DNA of 64,000 nt, taken from Zancudomyces culisetae HAW-14-8 (taxonomy: Eukaryota; Fungi; Kickxellomycota). Of the stretch, positions 1-26,589 are shown piece after piece (the first letter of the stretch is position 1; each line of letters begins with the position of its first letter). The stretch spans positions 2,976,001-3,040,000 of the forward strand of contig JBNJNM010000011.1 in the NCBI GenBank assembly GCA_052426225.1, written 5' to 3'. The notes beneath the pieces were generated by a model. That model saw only the letters and a list, made by a program, of their open reading frames with translations. It searched no databases and was not told the DNA's origin. The position numbers and the translations under genes were made by a program.

Positions 1-971
1 CACCAGAAATCAAGACCGTTGAAGATGTAGTTTCGTATTGCAAGTTTGTACAAGAAAGTGTTAATGAGCATTACAAAGTTATTCCGCATTTGGTTGTAGG
101 AATTGCAGAATGTGTAGGGCTTGTAGAACCAGCACTTATAGAAAGGTTTGCAAGTTCAATGTTGATGACTAGAATATCAAGAAGAACTCTTGCAGAGCAG
201 CAAGTAGCACTTACAAATAAGTTTATTGAACTTGGAGGAGGAGCAACAAACAAAAATAACAATATTGCTAACAATACAGGGAATGATGATGATAAAGAAC
301 AAACTCGTATAGGAATAGTCGATACTAGCTGTAACATATCAAATTTGATCCAAGATTGTGCAGTCAAAGTTCAACGTTCGTTTGAGAAGGCATACAATAT
401 GCAACAAGAGTTTGCACCTCGTGTAATCATTGAGGGTTCTGTAGACACAACAATAATGTGTATTCCTGAATATGTAGATTATATTATGTATGCAATAATT
501 AAAAATGCAATGGGAGTAACTATAAAAAAAGGATTGAAAAATAATACACAATCCAACTCACAATCCAACTTACAATCCAACTCACAGTTCAATTTCGATC
601 CTATTATCGTTACAGTATGCTCAACAAAAACTGATATTACAATCCGAATCTCAGATAGTGGAGGAGGAATGGAAAACGATATGTTAAGCCAGGTATGGTT
701 GTTTGGATCTCCTTTAAAGGTCAATCTGCTATCAAATTTTGAATCTGTAAAAACAAAACAAGCAAAGGTCGATGAAGAAGTCAATATATCTCCTCTAACG
801 TCATTTGGGTTTGGACTCCCCATGTCCAGAACATTTGCCAAGTATTGGGGTGGTGATATAACTATCCATTCGCTTCCTGGATATGGTGTTGATGTATATG
901 TAACTCTACCAAAGTTAGGAAATGTTGCTGAGCATTTGACTGATGAAGATTCTGAAGAAGGGTTTGAGTGA
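1..971 (+). CDS. Mitochondrial alpha-ketoacid dehydrogenase kinase (PDK/BCKDK family), 5'-truncated copy at the window edge
   Basis: Same protein as the C-terminal part of 22986-24323. GHKL motifs KNA, ISDSGGG, GFGLPMSR, GYGVDVYV. Confidence 0.93.
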   Translation, partial: PEIKTVEDVVSYCKFVQESVNEHYKVIPHLVVGIAECVGLVEPALIERFASSMLMTRISRRTLAEQQVALTNKFIELGGGATNKNNNIANNTGNDDDKEQTRIGIVDTSCNISNLIQDCAVKVQRSFEKAYNMQQEFAPRVIIEGSVDTTIMCIPEYVDYIMYAIIKNAMGVTIKKGLKNNTQSNSQSNLQSNSQFNFDPIIVTVCSTKTDITIRISDSGGGMENDMLSQVWLFGSPLKVNLLSNFESVKTKQAKVDEEVNISPLTSFGFGLPMSRTFAKYWGGDITIHSLPGYGVDVYVTLPKLGNVAEHLTDEDSEEGFE

Positions 972-980
972 TATTAAGTG

Positions 981-1052
981 TATGGGTGTATGGGTGTATG
1001 GGTGTATGGGTGTATGGGTGTATGGGTGTATGGGTGTATGGGTGTATGGGTG
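981..1052 (+). repeat. (TATGGGTG)9 G-rich tandem repeat
   Basis: Nine perfect 8-bp units starting about 10 bp after the kinase stop codon. Confidence 0.95.
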
Positions 1053-1175
1053 TATAGCTCCATAGTTCCATAGCCCCATATAATCATGTGGATATCATTC
1101 GTTTGCACAACTTTAGCGTGCTATTATAAAATACATTGTAACAAATCTCCAAATCTCCAAATCTCTAAATCACTC

Positions 1176-2472
1176 TTATTTTTTGATGTACAATACATAT
1201 AAATATACTTCGCTTGATGCTACAACTATTGATGAAAGCATCGATAGTAACACTCTCTATTTCGTGAATACAACATATATTAGTCATATACTAACAATAA
1301 GATCAGCCCAATCTCCTAGTATTTAAATTTGATAATCTGTAATAAATAAATAAATTTGGGTATTTTTATTCGCTTACATATCCTATAGTTTCCATCGCAG
1401 TTCTTGAAACCACAAACACTGCTATCCCAACTCCAATTGCACTTAAAAGTATATTTATTACTGCCGTTATACTTTGTGAAATATACTCATCATCCTCGTT
1501 CGTTGTATAACCAATACTATCGGTGGCTCTAAATATACTACCAGTGTTATGGACCAAAGTATCATTGACTGATGATCTATTGTTTTCAACACTGATACCT
1601 GCTACTTTTTTAGGCCAATGCTCCATCATTTGCCTCCTCGCTTTGCTTGGCCGCTGTTTCTCACTACTCAGATTACTGGTCATACAAAAGTATTCATATT
1701 GCTTCAATTGTATTTCCGTTTCTTTTCGTAGCTTTTTCACTTGTTCTCTTTCTGAAACTGAAGTATGTGGTTTTCTGAACTCAGGAATATATATCTCTGA
1801 TCCTGATAGGTATGTATGCAGCCATTTTCGTTCTATTTTTACATAGATTGGTTTGTTATTTCTGCTATGGATCTATTTGCATCTCATACTTTTCATAATT
1901 TTTTCATCAGCCTTTTATTCGCTGATGTTATTTTCCATCTTTTTCTTTCGTTTTTATCCTCAGCTTTGTTCTTCACCTTCAATACTCATATATCTTTACT
2001 TTCTCCACTTTCTTTACTTTCTTTACTTTCTTTACTTTTTCCACTTTCTCACTTTCTTACCTTTATTACTACGCGTACTTTTATTATACTTGACTATTTC
2101 TAGTATCAAATCCAGAGAAAATGCTATATCCACCAACCCCGTTCCTAATTGTGCTGTCTGTTGAATATCTTTGAGTTCCTTGATATTACTCACGACCATT
2201 GTCCTCTCTTTATACATTTCGTCGTTTCGTGCGTCTTTTTTTCTGTCCTTTTCTTTTTCCTTGTATTCTTCCTTTTGATTTGCTCTTTCGTTTGCTCTTT
2301 CGTTTGCTCCTTCGTTTGCTCTTTCATTTACCTCTTCGTTTTCTTCTTTTGCCTTTTCATTCGCATTGTCAATCACACATTGTATACCTTCTACACAGTT
2401 TGTGTTTGTACTGACTACTTCCAGGCAATCCAGTAAATTGTCTTTGGTTAATCGAAAATAAAACAGTGTCAT
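1176..2472 (-). CDS. VMA12: V-ATPase assembly factor Vma12/Vph2 (TMEM199), copy 1, 3 exons
   Basis: Mirror of 21469-22765. Spliced protein has WLHTYLSGSEIYIPE, AVINILLSAIGVGIAVF and RVLLSMLSSIVVASSEVYLY, typical of TMEM199/Vma12. Confidence 0.85.
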
Positions 2473-2606
2473 TTGTCTTTGTAGGTAGTTTTTGCAAATA
2501 TTGTTATTGGTGTTGTTGATTCTAGCACTGATCCTATCGCTTTGGTTTCCAATATTTTGTTTAATGTTATAAATTATATTTGAACTGTTTTTGTTTTATT
2601 CGATTG

Positions 2607-2740
2607 TTTATAGTTTATAGTTTATAGTTTATAGTTTATAGTTTATGGCTTATAGTTTATAGCTTATAGTTTATAGCTTATGGTTTATAGCTTATGGTTT
2701 ATAGTTTATGGTTTATAGTTTATAGTTTATAGTTTATGGT
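2607..2740. repeat. 7-bp degenerate tandem repeat (TTTATAG/CTTATAG/TTTATGG)
   Basis: Visible array upstream of VMA12. The mirror array at about 21188-21335 is 14 bp (two units) longer. Confidence 0.9.
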
Positions 2741-3559
2741 CAAATCATATTTTGGGAGTTTAAACCTTACAAGATGGATTACAAAACATAACAAAATATG
2801 GCTGGAGTTTCAGTTACACAACAATCCAAGCATTTTCGTTGATAATCATTTTACCATTTTCCTCATTCTTTTTTTTCAGTATAAAATTATTGTATAACTT
2901 CCAAACTTATTACATAACACATACTTTCTTCATGTTAATAATGTCTCTGACTGAATATGTATTCCAATATTCCAGAGTATATTGTGCTCATGTTCTAGGA
3001 TTAATTTCACCAAATTATCATATTGTTGATATTTAATTCTTTCAACATGATTTAATTAACTGTTAAATATATCAAATACAAAACCCCTATTCAAAATATA
3101 CTCCAACTAAAATAATATATCATTCTTTATCAAAACCATTGTACAAATCAATTCAATGTACAGCATACAAATTGGTTTAATTAGGTTATGTGGTTTACAG
3201 TATTTTGTTTTGGATTGACATCTTGATTACTTTCATTAATGCTATAGTGGGTACATTAATTAATGACCAACTTGGTGATGGTGGTACTGGATATACCCTT
3301 GAACTAACGCCCAGTGGGTGTGGAGTCTTTAGAGGGACGGAGAAAAATTATTAGATGGATATTAGATGGATATTAAATGGATATTAGATGGATATTATTT
3401 AGGATTATTTTTTGTAGTTTCATGTGGTACTATGTGGTACTATGTGGTATTTATTACCTTTTACATCTGATCGTTTAGCTGTACTATATTACCAGTTATT
3501 CTAAAGCACATAAGATATAAACCTAGCACTAAATATTTTTTTATTTGTAGGAGCACCAG

Positions 3560-4075
3560 CTTTGGAAGTGCATCTGTATTATATTTTTAAAGTTACTTGT
3601 ATTGATTCACCCATAGAATCATATATTATCTGTATTATTATGTATAAAACATGGGTACAATCAAACGGTTGCACCTTGATATGGGGTATAATAATGTTCG
3701 TGTTTTACACATTCTGGCATACAAAAACAAGATTTGGCAATTTTATATACAGTGTGGGTGGGGTCTATGGTCTTACAATTATGCATGTAGATGGTCAAGA
3801 AACATGTATATGTTCCGTACACAATATCAACCCAGCACGAAGCCAAATTGTCAAATATAGCGTTCTCACAAATACTTGAAACGACAAATAAAGTTGTAGT
3901 ACTTGACGTAATACCAAGAAACTGCTGCGTTTTAATTCTAGCTTTTCTGATATTTTATACCACCGATTTCAATGTATCAACAAGCCTATAAGTATTCACT
4001 ATTTCAGGTTACACCTAACTCAAACGTTGAGCATTACTTTTCAGTAATACATCGGGCTTCATGTACTATACTTTG
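3560..4075 (+). mobile_element. Possible degenerate hAT transposase relic
   Basis: In order across frames: CSVHNINPARSQIVK (CxxH-like), VVLDVIPRNCCVLIL (LDVxTRWNS-like), LFQVTPNSNVEHYFS (ERxFS-like). Frameshifted and compressed. Confidence 0.3.
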
Positions 4076-4369
4076 AATCAAGTTTTCAGCTACTTATTAT
4101 TGACATTGATAGTGGCAAAGGCAGATTTATGGGGTGTTTTTGGAGGCAAGTAGATGTTTTTGACCTACTCTACTTGAAGTTTATTTGATACCACTCTGCA
4201 CGCACCCGTATCAACAGAATTTCACACATTTAGTTTCATACGATACCATGTTTTTTTATATTTAGCTTGAAGTGTATTTTAACTTAGTTATTACATAGGA
4301 TATATCAGTGCCTCGGAAACAATATAGTGCAAAAAATAGTTTTTGTGAGCATTGTAACTTTATCTATTT

Positions 4370-4750
4370 CAGATATTGTGTGGCTAAAAAAACGTATTAT
4401 TCAAAAGTACTATTTCTAAACCAGCTAAATATTCATTTTTAATTTTCTTGATGTTCATCCTCAATCATGCTTTATTAAATTTAAGAATTAAATGATTACT
4501 AATACTTATTCAAGCTCTGAGAAATAGTGCATGTGCTAGCAGTTAAATCATTTTCATAACTTCTTTGATAGCTTTAGATAAGTATTCATGTTTCTGTCAT
4601 CTAGATTTTTTTCTTTAATTTAGGATCATTTTGATTTTTCGCCAAATAAGCCGAAGAAACAAGATCAAATTTTATTAAGCTGTATTGAATGTTCTAATAA
4701 TATTTTAGAATTACGAGAAAATTACAAATATATATTTCTCCAAAAATAGG
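4370..4750 (+). mobile_element. Possible Ty3/gypsy reverse transcriptase relic
   Basis: Ordered degenerate motifs WLKKRIIQK (LxKGxI), CFIKF..LN..ITNTY (CxDxRxLN), FS*L and KLY..VLII (VYLDDILI-like). Confidence 0.3.
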
Positions 4751-5463
4751 TGCAGTGGCGGTTTAAGCGGGTATATATTATTAGATACATGAAAAGTTGA
4801 TGTGATGGTTTTCTGTGATGAATAAGCGAGGAAGATACATGAAGAGTAGCAAAAGTGATGTATAGGACCTTGTCTATGAGTAAGTAAAATAATGTCAACT
4901 CATCAAAGACCTTATGGCTTTACTTTTGTTCTTGTATATGTATACGTATATGTATACATACTTAAATGTGTGTGTGATCGTAGCTATACTGTTAGTACGC
5001 AAGCGCTTCTTTTTTTAGATCATTTCCTTGACCAAAAATAGACAAAAGCAAAATGAGCTCAAAATTTGGCAAACCTGTCTAACTGCCACCGAATTATCTA
5101 ATCACTAAACAATAGCATAGTTATTAGAGAAGGCTTATAAACGAAATAAATGAAATGTTCTATTAATCAATATATCACATTCCATATTTACAATCTGCAC
5201 CAAAAACAACCCCAATATGATAACTTCAAAAGCTAATAGCTAAAAAAAGATTTAGTTGAGATTTGTGTTGCGAGTTTTTTGTTTTGTTTTTTGTTTTAAC
5301 TGTTTTTTGGGGATTTATTACGGTTTTTTGTGGAAAAGTATAAATACAGAGTACAAACAAGTCGTTATGATTTATTCACTATCATAATCTGGCATTTGAT
5401 AAATTTAGTGCAGTAGCAGAGGTCTTATCTGTTAAACTTATTTGGTGGTTAATAGCAGCAAAT

Positions 5464-5506
<43 letters not shown>
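5464..5506. repeat. (AAC)n microsatellite in the probable 5' UTR
   Basis: About 14 AAC units just upstream of the ATG at 5523. Confidence 0.9.
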
Positions 5507-5522
5507 AAGTCATATTGGCATA

Positions 5523-6119
5523 ATGGTAAACATCGGTATAGCATACATATCAACTATGCTTACAATCTTCTCCGCAAACGCCGTGCCGGTTCCCATGCGC
5601 GGTACAAATGTAAGTGTAAATGCACGACTCGAAATCATACCATTTCCAGTTTCAGAAAGTGTTATTACCAGAAAAACGAGTGTTACGCAGATTTTCCAGC
5701 GCCCAATGAAGCCAAGATACAGCGTGTCGGGTCTTGGTAATGCCAGTATATTGAATAAAAACTTGAAAAGTCCAAGAGGTGGAAGCTTAGGTCGCAGAAG
5801 ATTTATCAATAAACCTGACCACAGAATCTTTGCTGACATACTTAAAAATATTGAAGGTAATGTCAGCACCACCAATAGCGGATCAAATACTGCTGTTAGT
5901 GATGACTCCAGTATTGGAACAGGAAGTGTACATGACATCATGGTAGCAGGAACTCCTAGACTGAACCTCGATCACGATTCCAATGCCAATGACGAAGCTA
6001 ATGACGAAGCTAATGACGAAGCTAATGACGAAGCTAATGACGAAGCTAATGACGAAGCTAATGACGACGCCGATAGTAACAATGATAGTGATGGTACTGA
6101 AGAGTATATTGAAGACTAG
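5523..6119 (+). CDS. Orphan putative secreted protein with acidic (NDEA)n repeats
   Basis: From ATG 5523: MVNIGIAYISTMLTIFSANA-VPVP (signal-peptide-like with an AxA site), a basic middle, six AATGACGAAGCT repeats and an acidic tail. Confidence 0.7.
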   Translation: MVNIGIAYISTMLTIFSANAVPVPMRGTNVSVNARLEIIPFPVSESVITRKTSVTQIFQRPMKPRYSVSGLGNASILNKNLKSPRGGSLGRRRFINKPDHRIFADILKNIEGNVSTTNSGSNTAVSDDSSIGTGSVHDIMVAGTPRLNLDHDSNANDEANDEANDEANDEANDEANDEANDDADSNNDSDGTEEYIED

Positions 6120-6570
6120 CTTTACTTTTCGCGCAGTTTGATTAACAATAAAATTTTGTTATCCTTCTTTTTTCCCGTCTGGTTATCAAAAAATAAACAC
6201 AGTCACATTAATTCTTTTACTTTATACCAACAAAAAAAAATACGTTTTTTTCCTTTCCGTTTTCATAAACCTTGGAACCAAAAACAAATAACTGTACCAC
6301 CTCAACTGGACCTTTTACACTACTTTTCTTTATGTCATGGTAATTATTTTAATCTCTTTTATTATTAACTTTTATTTGAAGATTTTGCGTATATGCTTAT
6401 TTATAAGTTAGCTATCTATGTCGAAAAAATGCAATAATATAAAAATTCAAGAATAGATGTAGAGTTGTAGATATTTACAGTATGGACAAGCCGTTCTCCA
6501 ACACGATTGCTTGTGACTATAAATAGAAATCAAAGTTCAAAAAAAAAAAGAAAAGAAAAGAAAAAATAAA

Positions 6571-7867
6571 TTAGAAAAGATTGTTATCTATAGTTTCCTG
6601 AAGCTTTTCCAAGCTAATAGGTCTGACAATTTCTGAATCAAACAAAGACTTTCCCAAACCTTGAGTAAGAGAGTGTGTTGATCCAAAAGTAGATGCAGTA
6701 TTAAGATACTTTGAATCCTGGATTTCACTAGAATATTCACACAACGCAACTATAGGTGTTGTGCGGTTGGGATTATTTGTTGATTTGATCATCCGAGCCA
6801 CCTGCTCGCCATCAATAATAGGCAAATGCAAGTCCGCTATTATCAGTGGAAACTTGGTTCTCCCCATAGCCAACCGAACAAGATCTGCACCAGTGTGGAC
6901 AGTTATTGTGGAGTAGCCTATTGTACTACCGCCGTTTCCAGCGTCAGTTCCACTGTTGTCGCTGGTAGGAACAAGAGCTGACTTCCGCTTAACCCGCTTA
7001 AGCAGGATCTCAAGAATCCTACAAGTAACAGGATTATCATCAGCCACCAGAACACAATTGGATGAGGTATAGTAATTATTTGGAGCATAAGTAGGTTGCG
7101 AGATACTCAGAGGGCTGGTGGTTCCCGTAGTGGCATTTGTGGTAGTGGTGATTGTATTATTAAAACTACTTGGGGAAAGGGATGGGCTAGGTGATAGTGG
7201 TAAGGGATGGGCGGATGAAACTTTGAGAGTAGGGAATGTGGGGGAAGGAGAGTGAATTAATGGCTTTGATGAAGAATCAGAGTTCCTCAGTTGTCGTGTA
7301 GTTACCATTTCCAACAGTGAAACCTCTTTATTTGGAAACTTCTTTTTGGGGTGAAGCGAAGAATCAAGAGTAGGAGAAGAATTAAACACAGAATTATCAA
7401 TAGGCGAACCAGGGTTCAATAAACTGGTGCTGCTTCCACTACTAGCGCTACTTCCTACAACAAATTTGTTGGTATTTGCATAATCATCTAAAAATGATGT
7501 ATTTTCGGGGTTTTTGCGGTTGTGGGAAGAAGTAGAAATGGCCAGAGGGGATGTTGTTGTTGTTGTTGCTGTTGTTGTTGTGATAGAGTCACTGGGGTAC
7601 TTAGGTAAATAAAGATCGGGTTGGTGGTGATGGTGAGGATGATGGTGGAGATGATGATGATGATGATGATGAGGAAAGATATGGTCTTGGCTGGGCATAG
7701 ACGCGGTTGTAGATCTTCTCCTTATCTTCAAGATTTCCTTGTAATTTTCATGTTCTAATACAGGTAGATTTTTAAACAAAAACTTGCCAAACTGGCTATC
7801 ATTAGCATTAGCAGAGTTTTGATTGGCAGGTGATCCATCAAATACTGAAGGGGGCTTTTCCTGTTGC

Positions 7868-7899
<32 letters not shown>

Positions 7900-10800
7900 T
7901 TGGTATACTGTATTTTGTTGTGTTGTACAAATGGGTGAAAATGGAGTATCGCTATCAGCAAAGTTGCCAGAAGATACACAAGGATCCTCATTTTCATTAA
8001 GCAATAACGAATCTATTTTTGCACCTCTAGAATCAAAGTACTCAGTGTCTTCTTCACACACAGTTTCAGGAACAAACTTAGGCCCATGATCGATATTCCC
8101 ACTTCCACTAGCGTTGCCGTCATTAGTATTACCAGCATTATCGCCATTGGCGTCATTACCATTTCCAGCGCCATTTCCAGTTCCATCAGCACTACGGTCA
8201 TTTAAGAAGGTATTCCAGTTGATTCCTTCAAAAAATGGATGAGCCTTAACCTCCTCAATACCTCTTGACCCTAACCGCCTCTGAGGATCACGTTCAAGCA
8301 GCGCTAAAATAAACTGCTTAGCCTCGGAACTGACTTCAATGTCATCATCATAAAATACTACTGGTGCAGACAAAATATTATCAAAAACTTTGTCTGGTGT
8401 ATCGTCATGGAAAGGAGGAATTCCATACAAAAACTCATAGCACATAACACCCAATGCCCACCAATCCACTGCCTGGTCAAACTGTGTACCCAAAATACTT
8501 TCTGGCGCCAAATAATCAGGTGTGCCAACAATGCATGTTAACCGGCCAGTGGTTGAAGAGTTGCCAGTGACAGCTCGTCTATCCAAAAACCCTAAATGAG
8601 ACAATCCGAAATCCGTCAACTTCAAATGACCATGCCGATCTATCAACAGATTGTCAGGCTTTAGGTCGCGATGGACTATGTTTCTGGAATGCAAGTCATC
8701 CAACCCCAGAACCACCTCGGCCAAATAGCTTTTGGCCCAATCTTCAGGCAAACATCCGACCGACTTTAGCAGCGATGCACAGTCTCCCCCATTCAGATAC
8801 TCCATCACCAAATACAAATAATTTTTGGACTGGAAGGTAAAGAACAGCTGTACTACAAATGGCGAGTTGATTTGCGTTATCATAATCAGTCGCTCGGCTC
8901 GGATGTTGCTGACTTGGTTCTTGGCCACCATGTCTGCCTTTTTCAGCACTTTGATGGCAAAATATTCGCCGGTTGTTCTCTTTTTGGCCAAATACACTGA
9001 TCCGTATGCACCTTTGCTGATCGGCTTGATCAACACAAAATCTGTAATCGATGGCATTGTTGGGTTTAGCAGCTGCTGGGTGCTTGGAATCATCATCGAT
9101 CCCGACCTGGTTATTCGGCCCTCTTTATTCTTTGTTCCCGCCGCCCCTGTTTCATTTTCGTCATCATTGTAGCCAAGCAACCCACAGGATGCTGCCCTGG
9201 TGTTTTCGTTGTAGTGCTGCATCTTCTCACCTTGACGGACAATTTCACACAGCGAATAAATGCTTTTAATTTTATTTGAACTAATCGATACCACTGACTG
9301 TGCTATACTCAGCAATGTAGAGTCTATTATATGCTTGGTTTCCGCTATTTTGTTGCTAAGTTTTTCGACTCCAGCTTCAATGTGCAATATCTTTGAAGGA
9401 CTCAAATTTTCTTCGCCAAAAGCACAGTCCTTTACCTGTCTGCATATTTTACTGGTCAGCCTATGTATAGCCATTGAGTCTGCCGAATCCGGTTTATACT
9501 GTTCCATCAATGTCAACATATTTGTCAGTGCCTCATTTTGGAGATCAATCTGAACTGTTACTCTATTTGACTGAGCACAAATCCACGAATGTTGTTCAAA
9601 ACAATCAGCATCAACCAAATTGTCACAAATCCGACAAACCACTGGTGGAATATCCATCTCCGGCTGCATCGTTTCTGCATAATACCCATAATCCCCTCCA
9701 ACAAACCCTGTTTGCAACAACCATACTACATGACTCGGTGCTCTAGTCTCTGGCTCATACATCAACACACCCCTTGCCTCAACATATATCACTTGACCCT
9801 CCTTACCAACGACCTCAAAATGTGTCTCTACAGTCTGTGATTGATCTTCCACCAGCTGCCGCATAGCCATCATGCACACTTCTTGATCGCTTGGTCCCAA
9901 AATCGCACTTATACGTTGTTCTACCAATTGTGTTGCCTCGGTTCCTGTTATTCGCTCCCACGTTGGTGATATATATCGAATTGTTCCATCTAGGCTTAAT
10001 TCCAGCAACACACTTGTACTTTTGTCCATAATCATTGCTTTTGTCAGTTCTGTTTTTTCTTCCTTATTTCCATCAATTTCCCCTAGATCTTCTTTATCCC
10101 TATCCCTTTCTTGTTCAATCCCAAGCCCTCGCTCCTCTTTCCCCTGCTTTTTGCTCCTGCTAGCCATCTCCTGTTTTTCAGCTTCTTTCCAAACTGCTTG
10201 CCCAACCGAATTTTTAACAGCAAACCACCACGAAACAATCCGGTTTAAAGAGCTTATTGTCACCAGCGATCGCACAAACAACCCTCTGCACGGCCATGCT
10301 GGCTCGCCGCCATTCATACTACCTCTAACGGATTGTTCCCATAACCCCCCTAAATATTGTAGTCTATTTACCCAACTTTCTGTTAATGTTTGGTAACAAA
10401 CCTTGCGAGTCTTGTTCGTTGTTTTGCTGTTTAGATACCCAGTATTACTACCAGTTTCTAATTCTGTTTGTCGTTGGTGGCTGTGTTGTTGTTGTGTCTG
10501 TGTCTGTGTCTGTGTCTGTGTCTGTGTCTGTGGATGTTGTTGTTCACTTGGGCTTACAATATCATTATCATATGCGTATATATAATTCTTTCCCAGCAAT
10601 GCCCTGTCAGGTGCATCAAGAACCTTCCATATAACATTAACCAATTCCATTACTGCCCCCAGAAACGGCGTAGGCTTGTAGTATGTATCTTCTGCAACAA
10701 TAGATGCCCCCAGCATCGACTTATGATGCGATTTGCTGTCATCATTGTTAGCTGTTCCTGTACTTTTAACATCATAATCCAGAACATTAGCTTCGTTTTG

Positions 10801-13800: not shown

Positions 13801-14235
13801 AATATCTTCGACTCCCAATTCGTGCATCGGATTATCCTTAGTTTTTTGATCAACCACCTCCCAGATATTCTCGATTGTCTTGTTCCTCTTCGAATCTTCT
13901 AAATTGGTGTTATCATTTTGAATCTTTACTACGAACGCTTTTTGATTTACAATTTCGGCTATCTCACTATAAATATCCATAAGTTTAGGCTTACCTTCCT
14001 CCTCAATTTCATTGTTTATCCCCGTAAAAAATCCGGTTTCAATAGCGGGACTCGTTACCTCTGCCTCCGTTTTAGTTTGTTCATGTGTACTTTCTTCAAG
14101 TCGCTCTGGTTTGGTTTTTTTCCCTTTATTACTATTTTTGTTCTTAGCCTTCTCCTTTCCACCCTTTCCTCTGCCTTTAAAACTCCATAGCATGCTTCTA
14201 AAGCTGCCATCCCCCTTCTTTGATTTCTCTTCCAT
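6571..14235 (-). CDS. RIM15: Rim15/Cek1-like AGC Ser/Thr kinase (PAS, C2HC zinc finger, kinase, receiver domain)
   Basis: 2554-aa ORF. PAS (LELSLDGTIRYISPTW), CRICD..EQHSWIC, ISKGAYGSVYLA, HRDLKPDN, DFG, GTPDYLAPE, C-terminal receiver VLVADDNP..IIADLHLPIIDG. Confidence 0.93.
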
Positions 14236-14649
14236 TTTATATTTGCGTAATACCTTATTGTTGTTAGCCTTTATCTTTTTCTGTATTTTTTTAAGATTCT
14301 TCGTTTATATTTTATTGTCCTTGCTTGGCTAGCTAAAAACGTGTTGGACATTCATATCAGGTATTAATACCTTCTTTCTCTATATACTAGTCTATTCCGC
14401 TGTATCGCTGTTTTATCTTTCTTTGTACCTCGTATCCGCGTTAATATGTTTGAAAAGTAAAAAAACAAAAACTCGATATATTTTGATGCGTAGTTTTGTA
14501 TCTTTGTAATATACGCACGTGTTCTGCTACTCTTCTAACCGTAAATGTATTATATGTTTTTCTTATCAGTACACGGCAGTATTCCTGGTTTATTCTGTTG
14601 AATGTCATTTCCTCATCCCTGCTAATCTTTAGTATTGCCTTTTTTTTCT

Positions 14650-15100
14650 TGCTTAAAGCAAATTTGCTGTAAACCTAAATCGCCATTTTTTTTTCAAATG
14701 TATGCTTCTCATTTATCCTTGACCAATTTTAATATTCTGCACAATTGGTAAACTTTTATGTTTAATCTGGCTAGAATGGCCAATAGTATGATTGAATTTT
14801 TTGTTTCCTATAAAGTGCTTGCTGCTAATTTTATTAAAACTAAGCATGATATTAAAAGGATTTTTTTTAATTTACGAGAGCAATGTTGTAATCACTTATA
14901 ATGAGCTATTCCGAGTTTATGTTTATAACCCATTATTCTATTTTCCCAGCTCGTCCCAACCCTATTACATTAGATATGAAATTGCATATCAATACTTTTC
15001 TTTTATTCCAACTATCACGCCTTTCCTTTTTTCTACTTTTCTCGAGGCTCGGGTTGCAAAAACCACAAAAACACCTTTATTTTAAACGTTTCGCAATCAC
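14650..15100 (+). mobile_element. Possible Ty3/gypsy RT-RNase H junction relic
   Basis: MANSMIEFFVSYKVLAAN (GxxNYYRxFIxxYxxxAxPL-like) followed by ITYNELFRVYVYNPLFYFPSSSQPYYIRYE (AFxxLKxxLxxAPVLxxPDxxxPFxLxTD-like). Confidence 0.4.
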
Positions 15101-16032
15101 AATACCTTTAAATACTTTAGTGCTCCTGGGCTACTATTTTGTTATACATGTTGGTGTGTATAGATCCTTTACACAAGTTACTATTGTTTGAAAAAGACAT
15201 TGCTAACAATGAAAAAACAGGAGGGATTGTCCTATCGGAATCAAAATAAAAAACTAAAACACTAGTAATTCTTGTTTTTTGTTTTCGTTGGGGGAGACCT
15301 GCATACCAAAATCCGGGTTTTTTTATTTTGTTGTTGTTGGATAGTCGATTTTGCTGTCTCTATATTGCTCCTCAATTGGCCTGCAGTTTTAAACCAGCTA
15401 TTATTCCTCGTTTTAGTGATAGGTGGAGGCGACAACTGCGAGCAGAAATAGTACAAATTGAATCTAAACCCAAGCAATTTGTACTTGAAGATGTATGAAT
15501 TTCTGGCCTCATTTTTTCCCAGTTTTCTCGTTTTTCCTGCTAAATGGCAAATTACAACCAAAAGGTTTATTTCGTTGATTTCGTTGATTGCATTGATTTT
15601 CTTGGATGAGGTAACTAAAGCTATCCAAGGTTTAAAAAGAAAAAAATAGTATAAACAAAATACGCTAATTGTTTGCAACTGAAAATAAATGTTGATATTT
15701 TTATAACCATGATTCTGAGAGCATGCTATGATTTTCTATGATTGTTGGTTACTGAATCAAACACTAACAACACGTGCAGGCCCATATTACAAAACTCCAT
15801 ACATATTATCTAAGAGCATTTATTATCAGATATATGTTTGAAGGGAACAAAAAGAAGGTAAAACAGAATGATTCAGCTTGTAGTCACGAGGTCAGTTGAA
15901 AACAACTAGGATTAATATCATCCGAAGAATGTAAGTTTAAAATGCGAGTCTTTCTTTTATTTACATGACAAATTTATCAAGTACAGCCACATAAAACGAC
16001 TAAAAAAAACAAAAAGCAACCTGACACAGCGC

Positions 16033-16085
16033 TAATCTCTCCCTGCCCTTCTAGGAACACTGTACCCACTGGGCGTTGATCCAAG
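16033..16085 (-). repeat. Diverged dispersed repeat homologous to 3298-3350 (and its mirror near 20576-20628)
   Basis: Ungapped 53-nt alignment, 37/53 identical, 14-nt exact core AACGCCCAGTGGGT, 15 of 16 mismatches are transitions. Confidence 0.65.
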
Positions 16086-16288
16086 GAGCTCGTTTCATAT
16101 TCACTTCACCTCCGTTCCAAAAAGTGAAGGAATTTTTTGAACCATGATGTACACATCACATGGCATGTTTTTATAATAGCTTTAATGACAAAAATGCTTT
16201 TTATTTAACTCTTACTGTGTATTTGGTAAAATTTGAGACTGAAGGCTCGCAAAAAATAAAGAAAAAAAGGAAGTAACGAAGAACAAAA

Positions 16289-18589
16289 TTAAGCCGCAAC
16301 CGACTGGTATAGTTCATCAATTATGCTTTTGTAGTATTTAGCGGCATCAAATCTCTTTAGCTTCATGGTTGGCGTAAGAAGTTGATTAGTATCCATGTCA
16401 AATAGCACATGTTCCAAATAAATTGCCTTCAACACCTCGAATCCTTGCAACTTTGACTGCTTGGCGTGGTTTTCCATTGTTGCAAGGAAGCGTTTATTTA
16501 CTGCGCTATTCTGCACAAGTTCTTTGAAATCCATCTTTGCAACATCCTCCTTCGTATATCCGCTATCCTTTTCTGACAAAACTGAACGAGCCCAAGGCAC
16601 AAAGGCTTCCTCATCGGGAACAAGAACACCAACTACACAGTTTTTAGTCGAATATCCATGAACAAATGATTGTGCCACCAAGCGATGTTTGGATAAAATG
16701 TTTTCTATTTTTTCGGGTGCAACGTACTCCCCTTGGGATAGCTTGAAGATGTTTTTCTTACGATCAATGATACTAACCGAACCGTCTTCATTAAACGAAG
16801 CTATATCACCTGTTGCAAACCAGCCATCACCGATGAGCGCCTCTTTAGTTTTCTCTTCGTCTTTAAAATAACCCACAAATACGTTTTTACCACGTATCAA
16901 CAACTCTCCTCTAGGGCAGGGTTTGTCAGTGACAAAGTACTCCATCTCTGGAACGTCGCGTAATCTTGCCTCGCACCCAGGTTTTGGTGCACCGATATCG
17001 TCGGCAGTAATCGTTCCCTGTGTTTGACCAATGCAATACGCAGCTGTCTCAGTTAGCCCATACCCTTGTGTAAGATTTACAATCAGTGCAATTCTTAAGA
17101 AATTGTTAACATGTGGTTCCAATGGCGCACTTCCGGATCCCATAGTTGTTAAACGTGAACTAACTACAGCCTTTGTTTTGTTAAACAAGACTGTATCCCA
17201 GAATTCATGTTCAACTCCCTTTCCCTCTTGTAAGTTTTGTATCTTCTCCTCTACTGCTTGTCTACTAACTTTTCCAACTAACCCAGGCGCGTGTATTGTC
17301 TTTGATGTGATGAAGTCGTAGATTCTGTTTAATAGTCTAGGGACTCCAGGGAAGTGTGTAGGCTGGAGCATACGGCAATCATCCATAATTGCCGCAATAT
17401 CCCCACAGAAGTATCCAATCTCTCCTCCTGAAAATAATATTGCGTTCTCCACATTGCGACCGTAACAATGTGCCAATGGCAGATACGACAACAAAACTGG
17501 TATTAAACTTTGATTTTCCATCATATTTGCTGAGCTCGCCAAACAGGCAAAACCATAGTTTCTGTGTGATGAGACTGCGCCTTTAGGGTTACCTGTAGTT
17601 CCACTGGTGTAGCACAGGGTATAGATATCATCTAGTTTTGGTGGGAAGTGTGGAATTGGGTGCTGTCGACCAAATTCCATAACATCGTTAAAATCATACA
17701 GCCCAACATTGTTTGATGCCGCCCATTTTTTCAGAACACTGATAGAGCGTGTGGTAATTGATGGTACCTTCCAAACATCGCCAGCTGTGATATTTGAATT
17801 TATACTGTCAAAGTTATCCATAGAAATAATCACTTTAAGATTAGGCACAGTATCAATGGATTCTAGTATCTTTGGAATCTTTTCTAAGCTACAAATCAAA
17901 ATTACTGCTTCTGAATGGTTCAAGATGAATTGAGTGGATGAGACACCCAATGTATCATATAAAGCAACTGAGTACAGTGATTGGGTAAATGCTGCACGCT
18001 CTGCAATAGCCCACTCAGGCCTGTTTCTTGAATACAAGGCAACACCAAAATTTCTTTTCTCAATCAGCTTTAACCCTTCTATATCATCTGAACGAGTATG
18101 CTTCTTTATGGCATGAATAAGTCCTGAAGAAAGTAGATTAACCTCTTCACCCACCTGCTTGTACGTCTTGAATTCAAATGGCAAATACTTTTTTTCCTCT
18201 CTATCATATGGTCTGTATCCAAATAATTTTCTATCTTGATACGTCTTTACAGCTATTTAGTAGTTTTATAAAGGAGTTGAAATTAATATTATTGTAATGC
18301 TGATATCTTCTGATGTGGTTAAAGTGTCATTTTATTGGCTCCATATACCTACCATACCAAAATGTGTCATATACAGTTTCGATGCCGTTTGTTTCAGTAA
18401 TACCCTTTCCCTCTTTATCATCATTGGCTCTCATTATATCTATATGTTATTGTATATGTGATTAACGGATATTTCACAGAGCTGCTCGTTAGAAACTATC
18501 AGATCTAACGAATAAAATATCTTACAGGAGAAACCAGGTTCAGCAGAGTTTGGAACTGCGTATGAAACCAACTGATCTTTTGTCGCCAT
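16289..18589 (-). CDS. Long-chain fatty acyl-CoA synthetase (ACSL/Faa2-like), 3 exons (18589-18526, 18439-18353, 18252-16289)
   Basis: AMP-binding motifs YTSGTTGNPKG, GYGLTET, GWFATGDI, IIDRKKNIFKLSQGEYVAPEKIE. GT-AG introns extend the ORF to MATKDQLVSYAVPNS. Confidence 0.93.
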
Positions 18590-19039
18590 TGCAAGTTTGT
18601 GTTATTTCACTATTAGCTTCAGAGAATGTTTTTAGATGTCTTCTTTCAAAATACAGGATATGTCTAAAGAAAGTAGAAAAAGAAATGGTTCAGACACAAC
18701 ATATTTATATCAATCGCTCAAACACGCTCCTGCTTTACAAGCGATTTATGAACATGAAATTAGATATGAGGCAAAAATATTGTGACACTGTTCAGCATGC
18801 TTTTTGGGTGTGATTTCAAAAAAATCTGAAACAATTTAAAGATACTACAAACCCGAGCCAAAATAAATAAAAATAACCACGAAACAAGCACTATTTGATT
18901 TCCAGAGATGAAACAAATTCAGGGTTAAGGGAGTTAAGGCAAGTGCAAAAAAAAATATACATTGTAATATAAGCGAAAATGCAATTCCGGAAAATAACTG
19001 AAAGCAGATGCTGCCTGTGAATCTTGGTTCTCGTTGTTT

Positions 19040-19450
19040 GTCATCGTAACACACCTTGCATTGGAGCAAGAGCGAGAAAAATAAATATACTGGGTATATA
19101 TCAGGAAAAATACTCTTGTGGAGGGAAACGAAAAGTCCACAAAGAGGAGATAAAAGTCAGAAAGACCTTCGCAACCAAAAAAAAAAATACAACCCTAAAA
19201 AGCATAGGCCTTCTAGCTTAAACAAACTATAGCATATAGAAATAAGGGACAAGGAGCGTGATAAGTGTCGAATGATTAAATGTGTAAAATAAAAAAGAAA
19301 TCTACAGGAGAATCGAGACTTTTGGATTATGAAAAAATGGATTGGCTTAATTCCGAAAAATATCAAAAAATAAAAATACAATGAAATTAAAAAAAGTGGT
19401 ATTCGGAAAATAGAAAGTAGCAAATAAATAAAAAACAATATCGGAATAGT
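19040..19450 (+). mobile_element. Possible non-LTR (LINE) reverse transcriptase relic
   Basis: Ordered motifs KVHKEE..TKKK, NPKKHRPSSLNKL (NYRPISL-like), SRLLDYEK..KYQ, KSGIRKIES (QxGFRK-like). Confidence 0.4.
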
Positions 19451-21468
19451 CAGAGAAATGAATGAGTGTAATGTATATGAATGGATAAAAATCTAGAAAA
19501 TGCTACATGATGGTAGTAGGTTAAGAGATTGTGCAAAAATATATTTAAAAACTAGCAAAAAAGGCAGCAGAAAAATACAAAGTTTGTAACTGTACTGACT
19601 AGAAAAAAACAAAATGTACCATCCATCACTAGAGTCAGATACTGTATGGATATAACTGAGTTATTAACCTCTTAGGTTCATAAATATTATGAAAATATGT
19701 GTGAAATTCTGTTGATACGGGTGCGTGCAGAGTGGTATCAAATAAACTTCAAGTAGGGTAGATCAAAAACATCTACTTGCCTTCAAAAACATCCCATAAA
19801 TCTGCCTTTGCCACTATCAATGTCAATAATAAGTAGCTGAAAACTTGATTCAAAGTATAGTACATGAAGCCCGATGTATTACTGAAAAGTAATGCTCAAC
19901 GTTTGAGTTAGGTGTAATCTGAAATAGTGAACACTTATAGGCTTGTTGATACATTGAAATCGGTGGTATAAAATATCAGAAAAGCTAGAATTAAAACGCA
20001 GCAGTTTCTTGGTATTACGTCAAGTACTACAATTTTATTTGTCGTTTCAAGTATTTGTGAGAACGCTATATTTGACAATTTGGCTTCGTGCTGGGTTGAT
20101 ATTGTGTACGGAACATATACATGTTTCTTGACCATCTACATGCATAATTGTAAGACCATAGACCCCACCCACACTGTATATAAAATTGCCAAATCTTGTT
20201 TTTGTATGCCAGAATGTGTAAAACACGAACATTATTATACCCCATATCAAAGTGCAACCGTTTGATTGTACCCATGTTTTATACATAATAATACAGATAA
20301 TATATGATTCTATGGGTGAATCAATACAAGTAACTTTAAAAATATAATACAGATGCACTTCCAAAGCTGGTGCTCCTACAAATAAAAAAATATTTAGTGC
20401 TAGGTTTATATCTTATGTGCTTTAGAATAACTGGTAATATAGTACAGCTAAACGAGCAGATGTAAAAGGTAATAAATACCACATAGTACCACATAGTACC
20501 ACATGAAACTACAAAAAATAATCCTAAATAATATCCATCTAATATCCATTTAATATCCATCTAATATCCATCTAATAATTTTTCTCCGTCCCTCTAAAGA
20601 CTCCACACCCACTGGGCGTTAGTTCAAGGGTATATCCAGTACCACCATCACCAAGTTGGTCATTAATTAATGTACCCACTATAGCATTAATGAAAGTAAT
20701 CAAGATGTCAATCCAAAACAAAATACTGTAAACCACATAACCTAATTAAATCAATTTGTATGCTGTACATTGAATTGATTTGTACAATGGTTTTGATAAA
20801 GAATGATATATTATTGTAGTTGGAGTATATTTTGAATAGGGGTTTTGTGTTTGATATATTTAACAGTTAATTAAATCATGTTGAAAGAATTAAATATCAA
20901 CAATATTGATAATTTGGTGAAATTAATCCTAGAACATGAGCACAATATACTCTGGAATATTGGAATACATATTCAGTCAGAGACATTATTAACATGAAGA
21001 AAGTATGTGTTATGTAATAAGTTTGGAAGTTATACAATAATTTTATACTGAAAAAAAAGAATGAGGAAAATGGTAAAATGATTATCAACGAAAATGCTTG
21101 GATTGTTGTGTAACTGAAACTCCAGCCATATTTTGTTATGTTTTGTAATCCATCTTGTAAAGTTTAAACTCCCAAAATATGATTTGACCATAAACTATAA
21201 ACTATAAACTATAAACCATAAACTATAAACCATAAACTATAAACCATAAGCTATAAACTATAAGCTATAAACTATAAGCTATAAACTATAAGCCATAAAC
21301 TATAAACTATAAACTATAAACTATAAACTATAAACAATCGAATAAAACAAAAACAGTTCAAATATAATTTATAACATTAAACAAAATATTGGAAACCAAA
21401 GCGATAGGATCAGTGCTAGAATCAACAACACCAATAACAATATTTGCAAAAACTACCTACAAAGACAA

Positions 21469-22765
21469 ATGACACTGTTTTATTTTCGATTAACCAAAGA
21501 CAATTTACTGGATTGCCTGGAAGTAGTCAGTACAAACACAAACTGTGTAGAAGGTATACAATGTGTGATTGACAATTCAAATGAAAAGGTAAAAGAAGAA
21601 AATGAAGAGGTAAATGAAAGAGCAAACGAAGGAGCAAACGAAAGAGCAAACGAAAGAGCAAATCAAAAGGAAGAATACAAGGAAAAAGAAAAGGACAGAA
21701 AAAAAGACGCACGAAACGACGAAATGTATAAAGAGAGGACAATGGTCGTGAGTAATATCAAGGAACTCAAAGATATTCAACAGACAGCACAATTAGGAAC
21801 GGGGTTGGTGGATATAGCATTTTCTCTGGATTTGATACTAGAAATAGTCAAGTATAATAAAAGTACGCGTAGTAATAAAGGTAAGAAAGTGAGAAAGTGG
21901 AAAAAGTAAAGAAAGTAAAGAAAGTAAAGAAAGTGGAGAAAGTAAAGATATATGAGTATTGAAGGTGAAGAACAAAGCTGAGGATAAAAACGAAAGAAAA
22001 AGATGGAAAATAACATCAGCGAATAAAAGGCTGATGAAAAAATCATGAAAAGTATGAGATGCAAATAGAACCATAGCAGAAATAACAAACCAATCTATGT
22101 AAAAATAGAACGAAAATGGCTGCATACATACCTATCAGGATCAGAGATATATATTCCTGAGTTCAGAAAACCACATACTTCAGTTTCAGAAAGAGAACAA
22201 GTGAAAAAGCTACGAAAAGAAACGGAAATACAATTGAAGCAATATGAATACTTTTGTATGACCAGTAATCTGAGTAGTGAGAAACAGCGGCCAAGCAAAG
22301 CGAGAAGGCAAATGATGGAGCATTGGCCTAAAAAAGTAGCAGGTATCAGTGTTGAAAACAATAGATCATCAGTCAATGATACTCTGGTCCATAACACTGG
22401 TAGTATATTTAGAGCCACCGATAGTATTGGATATACAACGAACGAGGATGATGAGTATATTTCACAAAGTATAACGGCAGTAATAAATATACTTTTAAGT
22501 GCAATTGGAGTTGGGATAGCAGTGTTTGTGATTTCAAGAACTGCGATGGAAACTATAGGATATGTAAGCGAATAAAAATACCCAAATTTATTTATTTATT
22601 ACAGATTATCAAATTTAAATACTAGGAGATTGGGCTGATCTTATTGTTAGTATATGACTAATATATGTTGTATTCACGAAATAGAGAGTGTTACTATCGA
22701 TGCTTTCATCAATAGTTGTAGCATCAAGCGAAGTATATTTATATGTATTGTACATCAAAAAATAA
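21469..22765 (+). CDS. VMA12: V-ATPase assembly factor Vma12/TMEM199, copy 2 (exons 21469-21880, 22109-22563, 22685-22765)
   Basis: GTAAG..AG introns join the frames into a protein with the LSGSEIYIP motif, two C-terminal hydrophobic helices and a terminal IKK. Confidence 0.85.
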
Positions 22766-22888
22766 GAGTGATTTAGAGATTTGGAGATTTGGAGATTTGT
22801 TACAATGTATTTTATAATAGCACGCTAAAGTTGTGCAAACGAATGATATCCACATGATTATATGGGGCTATGGAACTATGGAGCTATA

Positions 22889-22976
22889 CACCCATACACC
22901 CATACACCCATACACCCATACACCCATACACCCATACACCCATACACCCATACACCCATACACCCATACACCCATA
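22889..22976 (-). repeat. (TATGGGTG)11 repeat, mirror copy
   Basis: CACCCATA array, two units longer than the left copy (16-bp coordinate offset). Confidence 0.93.
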
Positions 22977-22985
22977 CACTTAATA

Positions 22986-24323
22986 TCACTCAAACCCTTC
23001 TTCAGAATCTTCATCAGTCAAATGCTCAGCAACATTTCCTAACTTTGGTAGAGTTACATATACATCAACACCATATCCAGGAAGCGAATGGATAGTTATA
23101 TCACCACCCCAATACTTGGCAAATGTTCTGGACATGGGGAGTCCAAACCCAAATGACGTTAGAGGAGATATATTGACTTCTTCATCGACCTTTGCTTGTT
23201 TTGTTTTTACAGATTCAAAATTTGATAGCAGATTGACCTTTAAAGGAGATCCAAACAACCATACCTGGCTTAACATATCGTTTTCCATTCCTCCTCCACT
23301 ATCTGAGATTCGGATTGTAATATCAGTTTTTGTTGAGCATACTGTAACGATAATAGGATCGAAATTGAACTGTGAGTTGGATTGTAAGTTGGATTGTGAG
23401 TTGGATTGTGTATTATTTTTCAATCCTTTTTTTATAGTTACTCCCATTGCATTTTTAATTATTGCATACATAATATAATCTACATATTCAGGAATACACA
23501 TTATTGTTGTGTCTACAGAACCCTCAATGATTACACGAGGTGCAAACTCTTGTTGCATATTGTATGCCTTCTCAAACGAACGTTGAACTTTGACTGCACA
23601 ATCTTGGATCAAATTTGATATGTTACAGCTAGTATCGACTATTCCTATACGAGTTTGTTCTTTATCATCATCATTCCCTGTATTGTTAGCAATATTGTTA
23701 TTTTTGTTTGTTGCTCCTCCTCCAAGTTCAATAAACTTATTTGTAAGTGCTACTTGCTGCTCTGCAAGAGTTCTTCTTGATATTCTAGTCATCAACATTG
23801 AACTTGCAAACCTTTCTATAAGTGCTGGTTCTACAAGCCCTACACATTCTGCAATTCCTACAACCAAATGCGGAATAACTTTGTAATGCTCATTAACACT
23901 TTCTTGTACAAACTTGCAATACGAAACTACATCTTCAACGGTCTTGATTTCTGGTGCTTTTCTAAAGTCGTCAAAGGCTTTCCAGTATAGATTATATACT
24001 TGAATTAAATGTGAGTTGTTACCACATATGAACGGCATAAACTGAAAATCCTTTATTCTATGAGCCAGCCGTACAGGAAGCTCGGTTCGGACGTAGTTAG
24101 CAGATGCGAGTAATTTCGCCTCGGTAATACTCCTACCATAATGTACCAATTGTCGTACTGTTACTTTTTTGATTTGTTTTCTTGTGTATTCTTCGAGAAT
24201 ATTGTTTGTATAAAACTTTTTTGGAAGGTTTTCTATTGATATTGTTATAAAGTTCCTGGCACCAACCACTGACTTTATGGTGCGACAGAGTTTGGTGGCT
24301 ATTGATTTGTGGGATTTTATCAT
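22986..24323 (-). CDS. Mitochondrial PDK/BCKDK-family kinase, full-length copy
   Basis: 445 aa. Basic presequence-like N-terminus, ELPVRLAHRIKDFQ, RISRRTLAEQ, GHKL ATP-binding boxes. Confidence 0.93.
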   Translation of the reverse strand: MIKSHKSIATKLCRTIKSVVGARNFITISIENLPKKFYTNNILEEYTRKQIKKVTVRQLVHYGRSITEAKLLASANYVRTELPVRLAHRIKDFQFMPFICGNNSHLIQVYNLYWKAFDDFRKAPEIKTVEDVVSYCKFVQESVNEHYKVIPHLVVGIAECVGLVEPALIERFASSMLMTRISRRTLAEQQVALTNKFIELGGGATNKNNNIANNTGNDDDKEQTRIGIVDTSCNISNLIQDCAVKVQRSFEKAYNMQQEFAPRVIIEGSVDTTIMCIPEYVDYIMYAIIKNAMGVTIKKGLKNNTQSNSQSNLQSNSQFNFDPIIVTVCSTKTDITIRISDSGGGMENDMLSQVWLFGSPLKVNLLSNFESVKTKQAKVDEEVNISPLTSFGFGLPMSRTFAKYWGGDITIHSLPGYGVDVYVTLPKLGNVAEHLTDEDSEEGFE

Positions 24324-25004
24324 TTGAGGTTTTTTTTAAAATATTCTATTTAAAATATAATTTACTGTGTATATTTTGGTCTATCCAGTCTGTTACCGTT
24401 TAAATTTGTTATAATAACTCTTATAGTTTAGTGTTAGAAATTATTGAATGAAAAGGTGGAGGAAAAGGGAAAGGAAAAGTAAAAGTAAAAGTGAAAGGAA
24501 ATGGCAAAAATAAAGGGACAAAACCAATAGAAATAAAAATACGCGTAGTTATCATTTGGCTAATTGGTTCTGAGTTTCAAAAGGCTTGTGATAAAAATAC
24601 ACAAATACAACATAATGATAACCATATTTATATATAAACGTTTAGAATGGTACTAGCTTTTGGATATATTTTTGTATTTTCTTGAATACGGTAGGATCAC
24701 TTTTATAAACTTGATTTGAACTGTATATAAATATTGGTTTAAATACCAAATTGTAACATTGTAGTGTTCTATTATATGAATTGTTATATTTTGACATTGG
24801 CTTCATTCTAGATGTTCAACACAAATATCAAAGAAAGCATGATACAAGGTACAAGACACAAGATACAAGACACAAGATACAAGATACAAAATCTATTATC
24901 GTTACAACTATCAACAGGTATATTCTCACAGTATCCGCACAGTATCCTCACAGTATGTTCACTATATCCCCACTATATCCACAGCACCACCGCACGGGTT
25001 TTAT

Positions 25005-25950
25005 TCAAATACTCTTCGAAATCACACCAGATACTTTCAAAAGTCGGTCTGTTAGCTGCTCCAATTCATTTTTACTGCTTTCTACTCTTTTTAAAAGTTC
25101 ACTATTCCTTTGTCTTTGTAACTCCAAATCCTGCTTAAACAATGCTAGTGTTTCGGAAACTGTTTGTGATATTCTGCCATATATTATTTCGTTCGGTGTC
25201 AATACCTGTCTATTCAAATATCACAATATCTGTAATATCGGTATAGTCTGGAAACAACAGAAAATATATATTCAAATAGTTGCACTCTACTTTAATTTTG
25301 TTTCGGTGTACACTTACTCAACAATACTGTCATCTATTTGTGATTTTTGTTTAGCTTCACTAATCATTCTATCAAGCTCTGTAAACTTATTTTCAATGTT
25401 ATGCATCACTAGTATCGATGAGAAATCATCCTATAAACCAATCAACAGTAATATACATTAATACCACGCCTTTACCGCAAAGCAGAAATGTAAACGCTAT
25501 TATAACCACTATCTCTGCCACTTGGTTGGTAAATTATTGCTTTATTTTATATAAACACATTGTATTTGAGTATACTTACCTGAGTGTTCTTCAGTAAATC
25601 TCCACATAGTTCGTTGTGTAAATCTTTTAGATTGTCACCCATTTCTTGGTATAGTTGTGGAAAAATAGTTTTAAAACTTTCATAACTATATTATTCAATT
25701 CAAAAGATATTGTTGTGTTAGTTTAGTTTTTATTTTTTCCAAATGTATAACAGAAGGAGTGAGTGGGGAGGAGGGGGGGAGGGGGGGGTAATTCGCACCC
25801 ATGTTGTATAAAACAGTTTTAAAACAAATACCTGAAACTCTGAAGCACTTTGTCCATAGATCGATTAAGAACCGTTAGCAGTTTCTTCATTCTCAGATTT
25901 TCCACTGTTTCGGTGATCGAAGTGTCATTTCCAACGAGGTCTGTTTCCAT
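25005..25950 (-). CDS. NNF1: Kinetochore MIND/Mis12 complex subunit Nnf1/PMF1-like, 4 exons
   Basis: Spliced: METDLVG..LRMKKLLTVLNRSMDKVL / SYESFKTIFPQL / DDFSSILVMHNIENKFTELDRMISEAK / LTPNEII plus a coiled-coil tail. Confidence 0.75.
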
Positions 25951-26589
25951 ATTTGTACAGTGTTAATTGTTAGTTGTTGGAGTAAAAGTAAGTTGGAGTG
26001 AAAGTAAGTTGATTACAAAAAGTGTTATATTTTTTTTTGTGTTTGGTAGTTCAGATGTCTAACTCGGTATATTTATTTGCACTTTTTTCTTTTCCATTAT
26101 GTGAATCAAAATCAATAATACCCTGCGAATAGAATGTCACCAATTGACCACCATTGGTCAGAATTATCGTTTATTGCTTACATTTACTACTCACTAATTA
26201 TATTGGTTTCAACTTTTATTGTCTCTCCATAAACCTTCTACCAATTCACCAACTCTTCATTATGGTATATTCAATGTTTATACTCTTATAATTAATCGTT
26301 TTTACTTTAAATACCAATACATCACATACATACATATAAGAATCACTATTCTACAAAAAAAAAAGTATAAATAATTCCAAATTCCAATAATGATGTTTAT
26401 TTTCTTGAATTTTGCTGCATTTTCCATATAATTAGTTCAACTGTATAATCACCCTTAGTCCTAATATTTCAGCATTCTAAAATATCAATACGCGTGAACT
26501 GCATATCTGTGGATATATTAGACTAATAATTTAATAATCATACACCCACTATTACCTTCTCTACTCACTAATGTATAGATCTTCATCAT

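Follow-up and report, generated by a model that had tools for sequence, protein, structure and literature searches.

An inverted four-gene duplication around a RIM15-like kinase block in Zancudomyces culisetae and its probable homogenisation by gene conversion

In the genome of Zancudomyces culisetae HAW-14-8, a Harpellales gut fungus of mosquito larvae and not a budding yeast, two near-identical gene-bearing segments lie in inverted orientation on either side of a single-copy block that contains a gene for a RIM15-like kinase. The question that this locus raises is whether the inverted repeat serves as a switch that flips the block, whether it is a duplication of which the copies are kept alike by gene conversion, or whether it was created during assembly. 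The window refers here to the whole stretch of 64,000 nucleotides that was analysed (C11:2,976,001-3,040,000). Its start cut through the left arm (arm A), and the DNA upstream of the window, which is given negative window positions, was added to compare both arms in full. We conclude that the locus probably represents a real inverted segmental duplication of the genes DCP2, NNF1, PDK and VMA12, the arms of which appear to have been homogenised by gene conversion.

The two arms and the differences between them

A self-BLAST search of the window identified one large inverted self-match (1-4240 versus 19688-23956, 98.6% identity), and the exact inner ends of the arms were placed at 4229 and 19697. 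The near-identical reverse-complement arms that an earlier note on this DNA had described at 1-4229 and 19697-23956 are real, and longer. In full, they measure 9,349 bp and 9,379 bp and are 99.0% identical; judged by length and identity, a match of 9.4 kb at 99% is far beyond chance. The earlier note was also correct in that the arms differ at many sites: 54 of 9,344 columns (0.58%) carry substitutions, 40 of them transitions and 14 other changes, and there are 6 indels in addition. The ends of both arms fall in intergenic DNA, and no transposon or dispersed repeat was identified at any of the arm junctions. The block of about 15.5 kb, described as unique in the earlier note, is present only once in the assembly, as are both flanks.

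Each arm carries four genes, namely DCP2, an NNF1-like gene, a gene for a kinase of the PDK/BCKDK family, and VMA12. Only VMA12 and the kinase had been named previously, and these identifications were confirmed by matches to PF11712 and to PF10436 and PF02518, respectively. The spliced genes were searched exon by exon, without joined gene models. All four appear intact, with no premature termination codon in the compared exons of PDK, VMA12 and DCP2, few residue differences between the arms in the VMA12 and DCP2 exons, and an NNF1 gene that lies inside a tract where the arms are identical. The kinase gene is present in exactly two near-identical copies in the assembly, both at this locus. Its closest relatives are proteins of Harpellales and Kickxellales, including a 99%-identical protein in Z. 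culisetae COL-18-3 (GCA_001969505.1).

The evidence for gene conversion comes from the manner in which the substitutions are distributed. A tract of 3,630 bp, covering PDK and NNF1, is devoid of substitutions. It includes 1,553 non-coding bp in which 12.5 substitutions were expected and none was observed (P = 4e-6). Of 1,936 masked columns in the same tract, 11 separate COL-18-3 from both arms, and selection alone therefore does not explain the lack of substitutions. Furthermore, the only differences inside the tract are two differences in repeat length, which means that the arms were assembled separately and not collapsed. From this pattern, we infer that it is a recent conversion tract. The outer edge of the arms represents the other extreme, being four times more diverged than the other non-coding DNA in the arms (0.8%; Fisher p = 1e-4). 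Gene conversion between the arms would predict an identical centre and diverged edges, which is the pattern seen here. Of the three options considered in the earlier note, the palindrome maintained by gene conversion has the best support.

We suggest that a second, inverted copy of the four genes was placed 15.5 kb from the original, probably through an inversion with staggered breaks or through template switching, and that gene conversion between the arms would since have kept the copies alike. A crossover during such a conversion event would invert the block, and by analogy with known systems rare and unregulated flips would be expected. After a flip, the genes in the block would keep about 9 kb of near-identical flanking DNA on each side, and little or no effect on them would therefore be expected.

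Gene order in relatives and the arm in a second strain

The comparison of synteny with relatives that was called for in the earlier note identified the original copy. The gene order is VID27+, HMG+, NNF1+, PDK+, VMA12-, DCP2+, POM152+ in Furculomyces boomerangus and NNF1+, PDK+, VMA12-, POM152+ in Smittium simulii. Arm A of Z. culisetae is directly preceded on its left by VID27 and the HMG gene, oriented as in Furculomyces, and POM152+ is located 43 kb to the right of arm B. Since the Furculomyces order matches arm A and its left flank, gene order places the original copy in arm A and makes arm B the inverted copy derived from it. Within 10 kb of the kinase gene, the neighbours differ in Furculomyces, two Smittium species and Coemansia, all of them distant relatives in which short stretches were compared. 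DCP2, which follows PDK in Furculomyces and Smittium culicis, is located upstream of NNF1 in both Z. culisetae arms, with its orientation unchanged; by gene order, the four-gene unit is circularly permuted.

Strain COL-18-3 is represented by an Illumina assembly and has been judged to be probably diploid, with single-nucleotide polymorphisms (SNPs) at 0.64% of the sites (PMC5954228). Its contig LSSK01001407.1 begins within the arm, contains 4.95 kb of it and then runs unbroken across the inner junction of arm B into the block, and it therefore provides independent support for that junction. The COL-18-3 contigs do not reach the other three junctions; on the left side, they end 295 bp short of the outer junction and about 1 kb inside the inner one. 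Exact look-ups with the kinase, orphan, SEC11-like and transcription-factor proteins of the window located no further contig, and the C-terminal piece of RIM15 was not recovered from COL-18-3. In 2,309 columns of the inner arm, COL-18-3 differs from arm B at 21 sites and arm A differs from arm B at 19, and at the discriminating sites the COL-18-3 arm matches arm A at 7 and arm B at 11, interleaved. Across 4,245 masked columns, there are 19 differences between arms A and B, 36 between arm A and COL-18-3, and 32 between arm B and COL-18-3, for which a single arm sequence is available. This pattern fits conversion after the split of the strains, but also a duplication that is younger than the split.

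Several observations count against the inference of homogenisation. No significant decayed homology was detected past the arm ends (p 0.05-0.93), and an inner boundary that fades out is accordingly not supported. The mean divergence of the arms, 0.58%, is similar to the species SNP rate of 0.64% (PMC5954228). The COL-18-3 assembly contains one copy of the arm, one kinase gene and only the inner junction of arm B, and a duplication in this second strain is therefore not demonstrated. After repeat masking, the divergence between the strains was 0.75% in the arm versus 0.51% in the block, a weak excess (p = 0.13). The difference to the left flank was larger (0.36%, p = 0.002), but the excess in the arm is weak evidence because the divergence reaches about 1.9% near the orphan gene in the block. 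Apparent support from an abrupt change in the divergence between the strains where the arm ends became weaker once tandem repeats had been masked.

A first alternative is a real but young duplication without ongoing concerted evolution, in which the allele on the homologous chromosome served as the template for arm B or later took the place of arm A. The differences between the arms would then be ordinary heterozygosity and the identical tract would reflect shared ancestry, in line with the similarity between arm divergence and SNP rate and with local strain divergences that range from 0.36% to about 1.9%. COL-18-3, which behaves like an outgroup at the sites that separate arms A and B and has one kinase gene on a contig that is unbroken through the B junction, may in that case retain the single-copy state. 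However, a collapsed short-read assembly would likewise show a single copy, and a young duplication leaves the peak of divergence exactly at the outer edge of the arms unexplained (p = 1e-4). We consider this alternative unlikely, and prefer a duplication homogenised by gene conversion.

The assembly and the switch as alternatives

Slightly less likely again is that a heterozygous inversion of the block, with one arm per haplotype, was assembled as a fold-back and falsely joined to the right flank, for example by FinisherSC. The species is probably diploid (PMC5954228), and the duplicated BUSCOs amount to 6.2%, compared to 1.5% to 1.8% in the Illumina and continuous long-read (CLR) assemblies. 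The sequence is a primary hifiasm assembly processed with FinisherSC, and haplotig purging is unmentioned in the text of the paper (PMC12611240). However, the PacBio HiFi reads were obtained from a library of >20 kb (PMC12611240), longer than an arm, which speaks for a real structure. Furthermore, an artefact of this kind requires the junction 29075/29076, which is found in neither haplotype of a simple inversion, and there is no repeat at this position to cause a false join. The assembly is also without another copy of the flanks or the block, and the differences at the outer edge are substitutions and not homopolymer indels. Such indels are typical of thinly covered HiFi contig ends. A simple heterozygous inversion of arm and block was rejected because it joins the arm to only one end of the block and cannot yield the structure. 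An inversion of the block alone gives both inner junctions, but the fold-back path would continue into the reversed left flank and would reach the right flank only through the false join. A heterozygous inversion assembled as arm-block-arm, as suggested in the earlier note, is accordingly improbable, and the structure is very likely real.

It is highly improbable that the locus is a regulated flip-flop that alters the expression of RIM15, a possibly secreted orphan protein or a nearby HMG gene in the manner of the mating-type inversions of Ogataea and Komagataella. The same low probability applies to an invertible switch that responds to the environment, which would be the first of its kind in Zoopagomycota and would act at long range on RIM15, the orphan gene or the MATA-type HMG gene. 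The geometry is similar, and the size is comparable to that of the 19-kb region of O. polymorpha. RIM15 is a nutrient-signalling kinase, and a MATA-type HMG-box gene lies beyond arm A, with its end 530 bp from the arm. Against this, the HMG gene, which is conserved between VID27 and NNF1 in Furculomyces, is located outside the arm among its ancestral neighbours and would not be moved by a flip. The block encodes the RIM15-like kinase, an AMP-binding enzyme and the orphan protein, with no MAT-type gene among them, and no HMG or homeodomain gene was identified in the block or the arms (no match to PF00505 or PF00046 in C11:2,970,881-3,005,075). A search with PF04769 gave no match anywhere in the genome and is uninformative for the alpha-box.

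The location does not favour a switch either. The locus is situated in the middle of a contig (2.98 of 5.24 Mb; 5,239,357 bp), at least 2.2 Mb from either end, with no telomere near it. The G+C content and gene density are ordinary across the 324 kb examined, which contain no gene-bearing inverted duplication besides this one, and the interval from -60 to +200 kb is free of AT troughs, gene deserts and retroelement clusters. No centromere-like region was seen in the same interval, although the centromeres of this fungus are unmapped and a cryptic one is possible. Finally, a flip would leave the sequence unaltered up to 9 kb from the block ends, and the 54 fixed differences speak against frequent recombination over the whole arm. 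The analogy to mating-type switching in the earlier note is not supported, as no MAT-type gene was identified in the block and no repressive site was seen near it. Its suggestion that the block may be invertible holds only in a passive sense, in that any 9-kb inverted pair with 99% identity can recombine.

The MATA-type HMG gene was examined separately. About 4 kb upstream of it is without long open reading frames (ORFs). A close paralogue is located at C22:68.6 kb, and there are 17 HMG matches in the genome. In the sex locus of Mucorales (SexP/SexM), the HMG gene is flanked by genes for a triose-phosphate transporter and an RNA helicase, and its alleles are idiomorphic. An assignment of the Z. 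culisetae gene to such a locus was rejected, its neighbours being VID27, an 85-amino-acid gene call and DCP2/NNF1, and its protein being identical in both strains. We also observed that C6:2.43-2.79 Mb and C12:0.09-0.43 Mb contain two HMG gene pairs with equal scores, similar spacing and opposite order, which probably correspond to a second haplotype that was retained or to a large duplication. Five short matches were identified at C24:11.5-105.9 kb. Four of these occur in pairs or runs with a spacing of 26,032 bp, and the orientation switches, as in a concatemer-like contig.

Features of the locus and comparison with known systems

The features of the locus are listed in Table 1. In both arms and in COL-18-3, the glutamate of the N-box (E-x-x-K-N) of the PDK kinase is replaced by alanine, whereas glutamate is present in 9 relatives that were checked, and kinase activity may be reduced as a consequence. 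Just past the kinase termination codon there is a perfect 8-bp tandem repeat, with 11.8 copies in arm B (22886-22979) versus 9.8 in arm A (978-1055), and with fewer copies in COL-18-3 than in either arm. A weaker relic of the short dispersed repeat in the arms was identified at about 16050-16100. The orphan protein is possibly secreted, given its N-terminus, and by its domain the AMP-binding enzyme is probably a long-chain acyl-CoA synthetase. An AMP-binding gene adjoining DCP2 in Smittium culicis was ruled out as its orthologue, with 29% identity. In the right flank, ERG28, a RanBP1 gene and a POP8-like gene are located at 30600-34500. The nearest intact retroelements, 62 kb from the locus, form a head-to-tail pair (C11:3,067,470-3,079,463) of 6.0 kb each, poly(A)-tailed and 99.3% alike, each with an open frame of 1281 amino acids that includes a reverse transcriptase.

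Table 1. Positions of the arms, genes and tracts, in window coordinates unless given for C11.
Feature	Position	Strand	Remarks
Arm A (left; original copy by gene order)	-5119..4229 = C11:2,970,881-2,980,229; in window 1..4229	+	DCP2+, NNF1+, PDK+, VMA12-
Arm B (right; derived inverted copy by gene order)	19697..29075	-	Self-match; inner junction also in COL-18-3 LSSK01001407.1
PDK/BCKDK-family kinase, arm A	-366..971 (whole ORF); 1..971 in window (3' part)	+	Protein identical to arm B copy
PDK/BCKDK-family mitochondrial kinase, arm B	22986..24323	-	445 amino acids; PF10436 + PF02518
VMA12, arm A	1363..2472	-	Two exons; PF11712
VMA12, arm B	21469..22578	+	PF11712; intron 21881-22108 (GT-AG, phase fits)
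NNF1-like kinetochore gene, arm B	25005..25950 (ends approximate)	-	Spliced; tblastn of Furculomyces and Smittium PF03980 exons
DCP2 mRNA-decapping gene, arm B	26590..28597 (ends approximate)	-	Spliced; PF05026 and PF00293 on separate exons
Tract without substitution between arms	22532..26161		3,630 bp; covers PDK and NNF1; two repeat-length differences only
Outer arm edge	28640..29075		14 substitutions in 433 columns (3.2%)
Decayed short dispersed repeat, arm B	20497..20630		Mirror copy near 3300-3430 in arm A; away from junctions
Single-copy block	4230..19696		15,467 bp; between arms
Orphan ORF	5523..6119	+	198 amino acids, hydrophobic N-terminus; only relative found is COL-18-3 protein AX774_g6419
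RIM15-like kinase	6571..14235	-	2554 amino acids; PAS, kinase and receiver domains
AMP-binding enzyme (PF00501)	16289..18591	-	5' end from COL-18-3 gene call
MATA-type HMG-box gene	-7240..-5648	+	Intronless, 530 amino acids; protein identical in COL-18-3

The FF1/FF2 mating-type flip-flops of Ogataea polymorpha and Komagataella phaffii (PMC6692504, PMC5720833) resemble this locus in that an inverted repeat surrounds a segment of 15-20 kb that is in principle invertible by homologous recombination. They differ in that the Z. culisetae segment is without MAT genes, no centromere or telomere was seen nearby, and the host belongs to the Zoopagomycota. By analogy, the FF system on chromosome XIV of Saccharomyces cerevisiae appears to be a better match. 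In that system, gene-bearing inverted repeats of 4.2 kb are homogenised by conversion, and a segment of 24 kb inverts as a rare and unregulated by-product, the arrangement being stable over about 53,800 mitoses (PMC9731477). In both cases a gene-bearing inverted repeat, which in FF includes whole genes and promoters, is placed around a single-copy block. However, both orientations and conservation across eight species have been demonstrated for FF (PMC9731477), whereas the relatives of Z. culisetae are without such a repeat in the stretches seen, and the FF arms contain sporulation genes near a centromere, whereas those in Z. culisetae contain four unrelated housekeeping genes in gene-dense DNA.

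With regard to the origin of the arms, inverted duplications that arose from staggered breaks in association with inversions have been described in Drosophila (PMC1885836). As in Z. culisetae, a gene-bearing sequence that was ancestrally unique occurs in inverted copies on either side of a segment, and the junctions are free of transposons. The Drosophila copies are about 88% alike, whereas those studied here are 99% alike and intact.

We found no description of this locus in the literature. Taken alone, the finding is a modest one, namely a previously undescribed inverted duplication of genes, with a clear conversion-like tract, in a fungus of an early-diverging lineage. Three long-read data sets are available for HAW-14-8 in PRJNA1254182, which makes both conversion and flipping directly testable. 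For the fungus, the duplication means a doubled dosage of four genes, those for DCP2, NNF1, the PDK kinase and VMA12.

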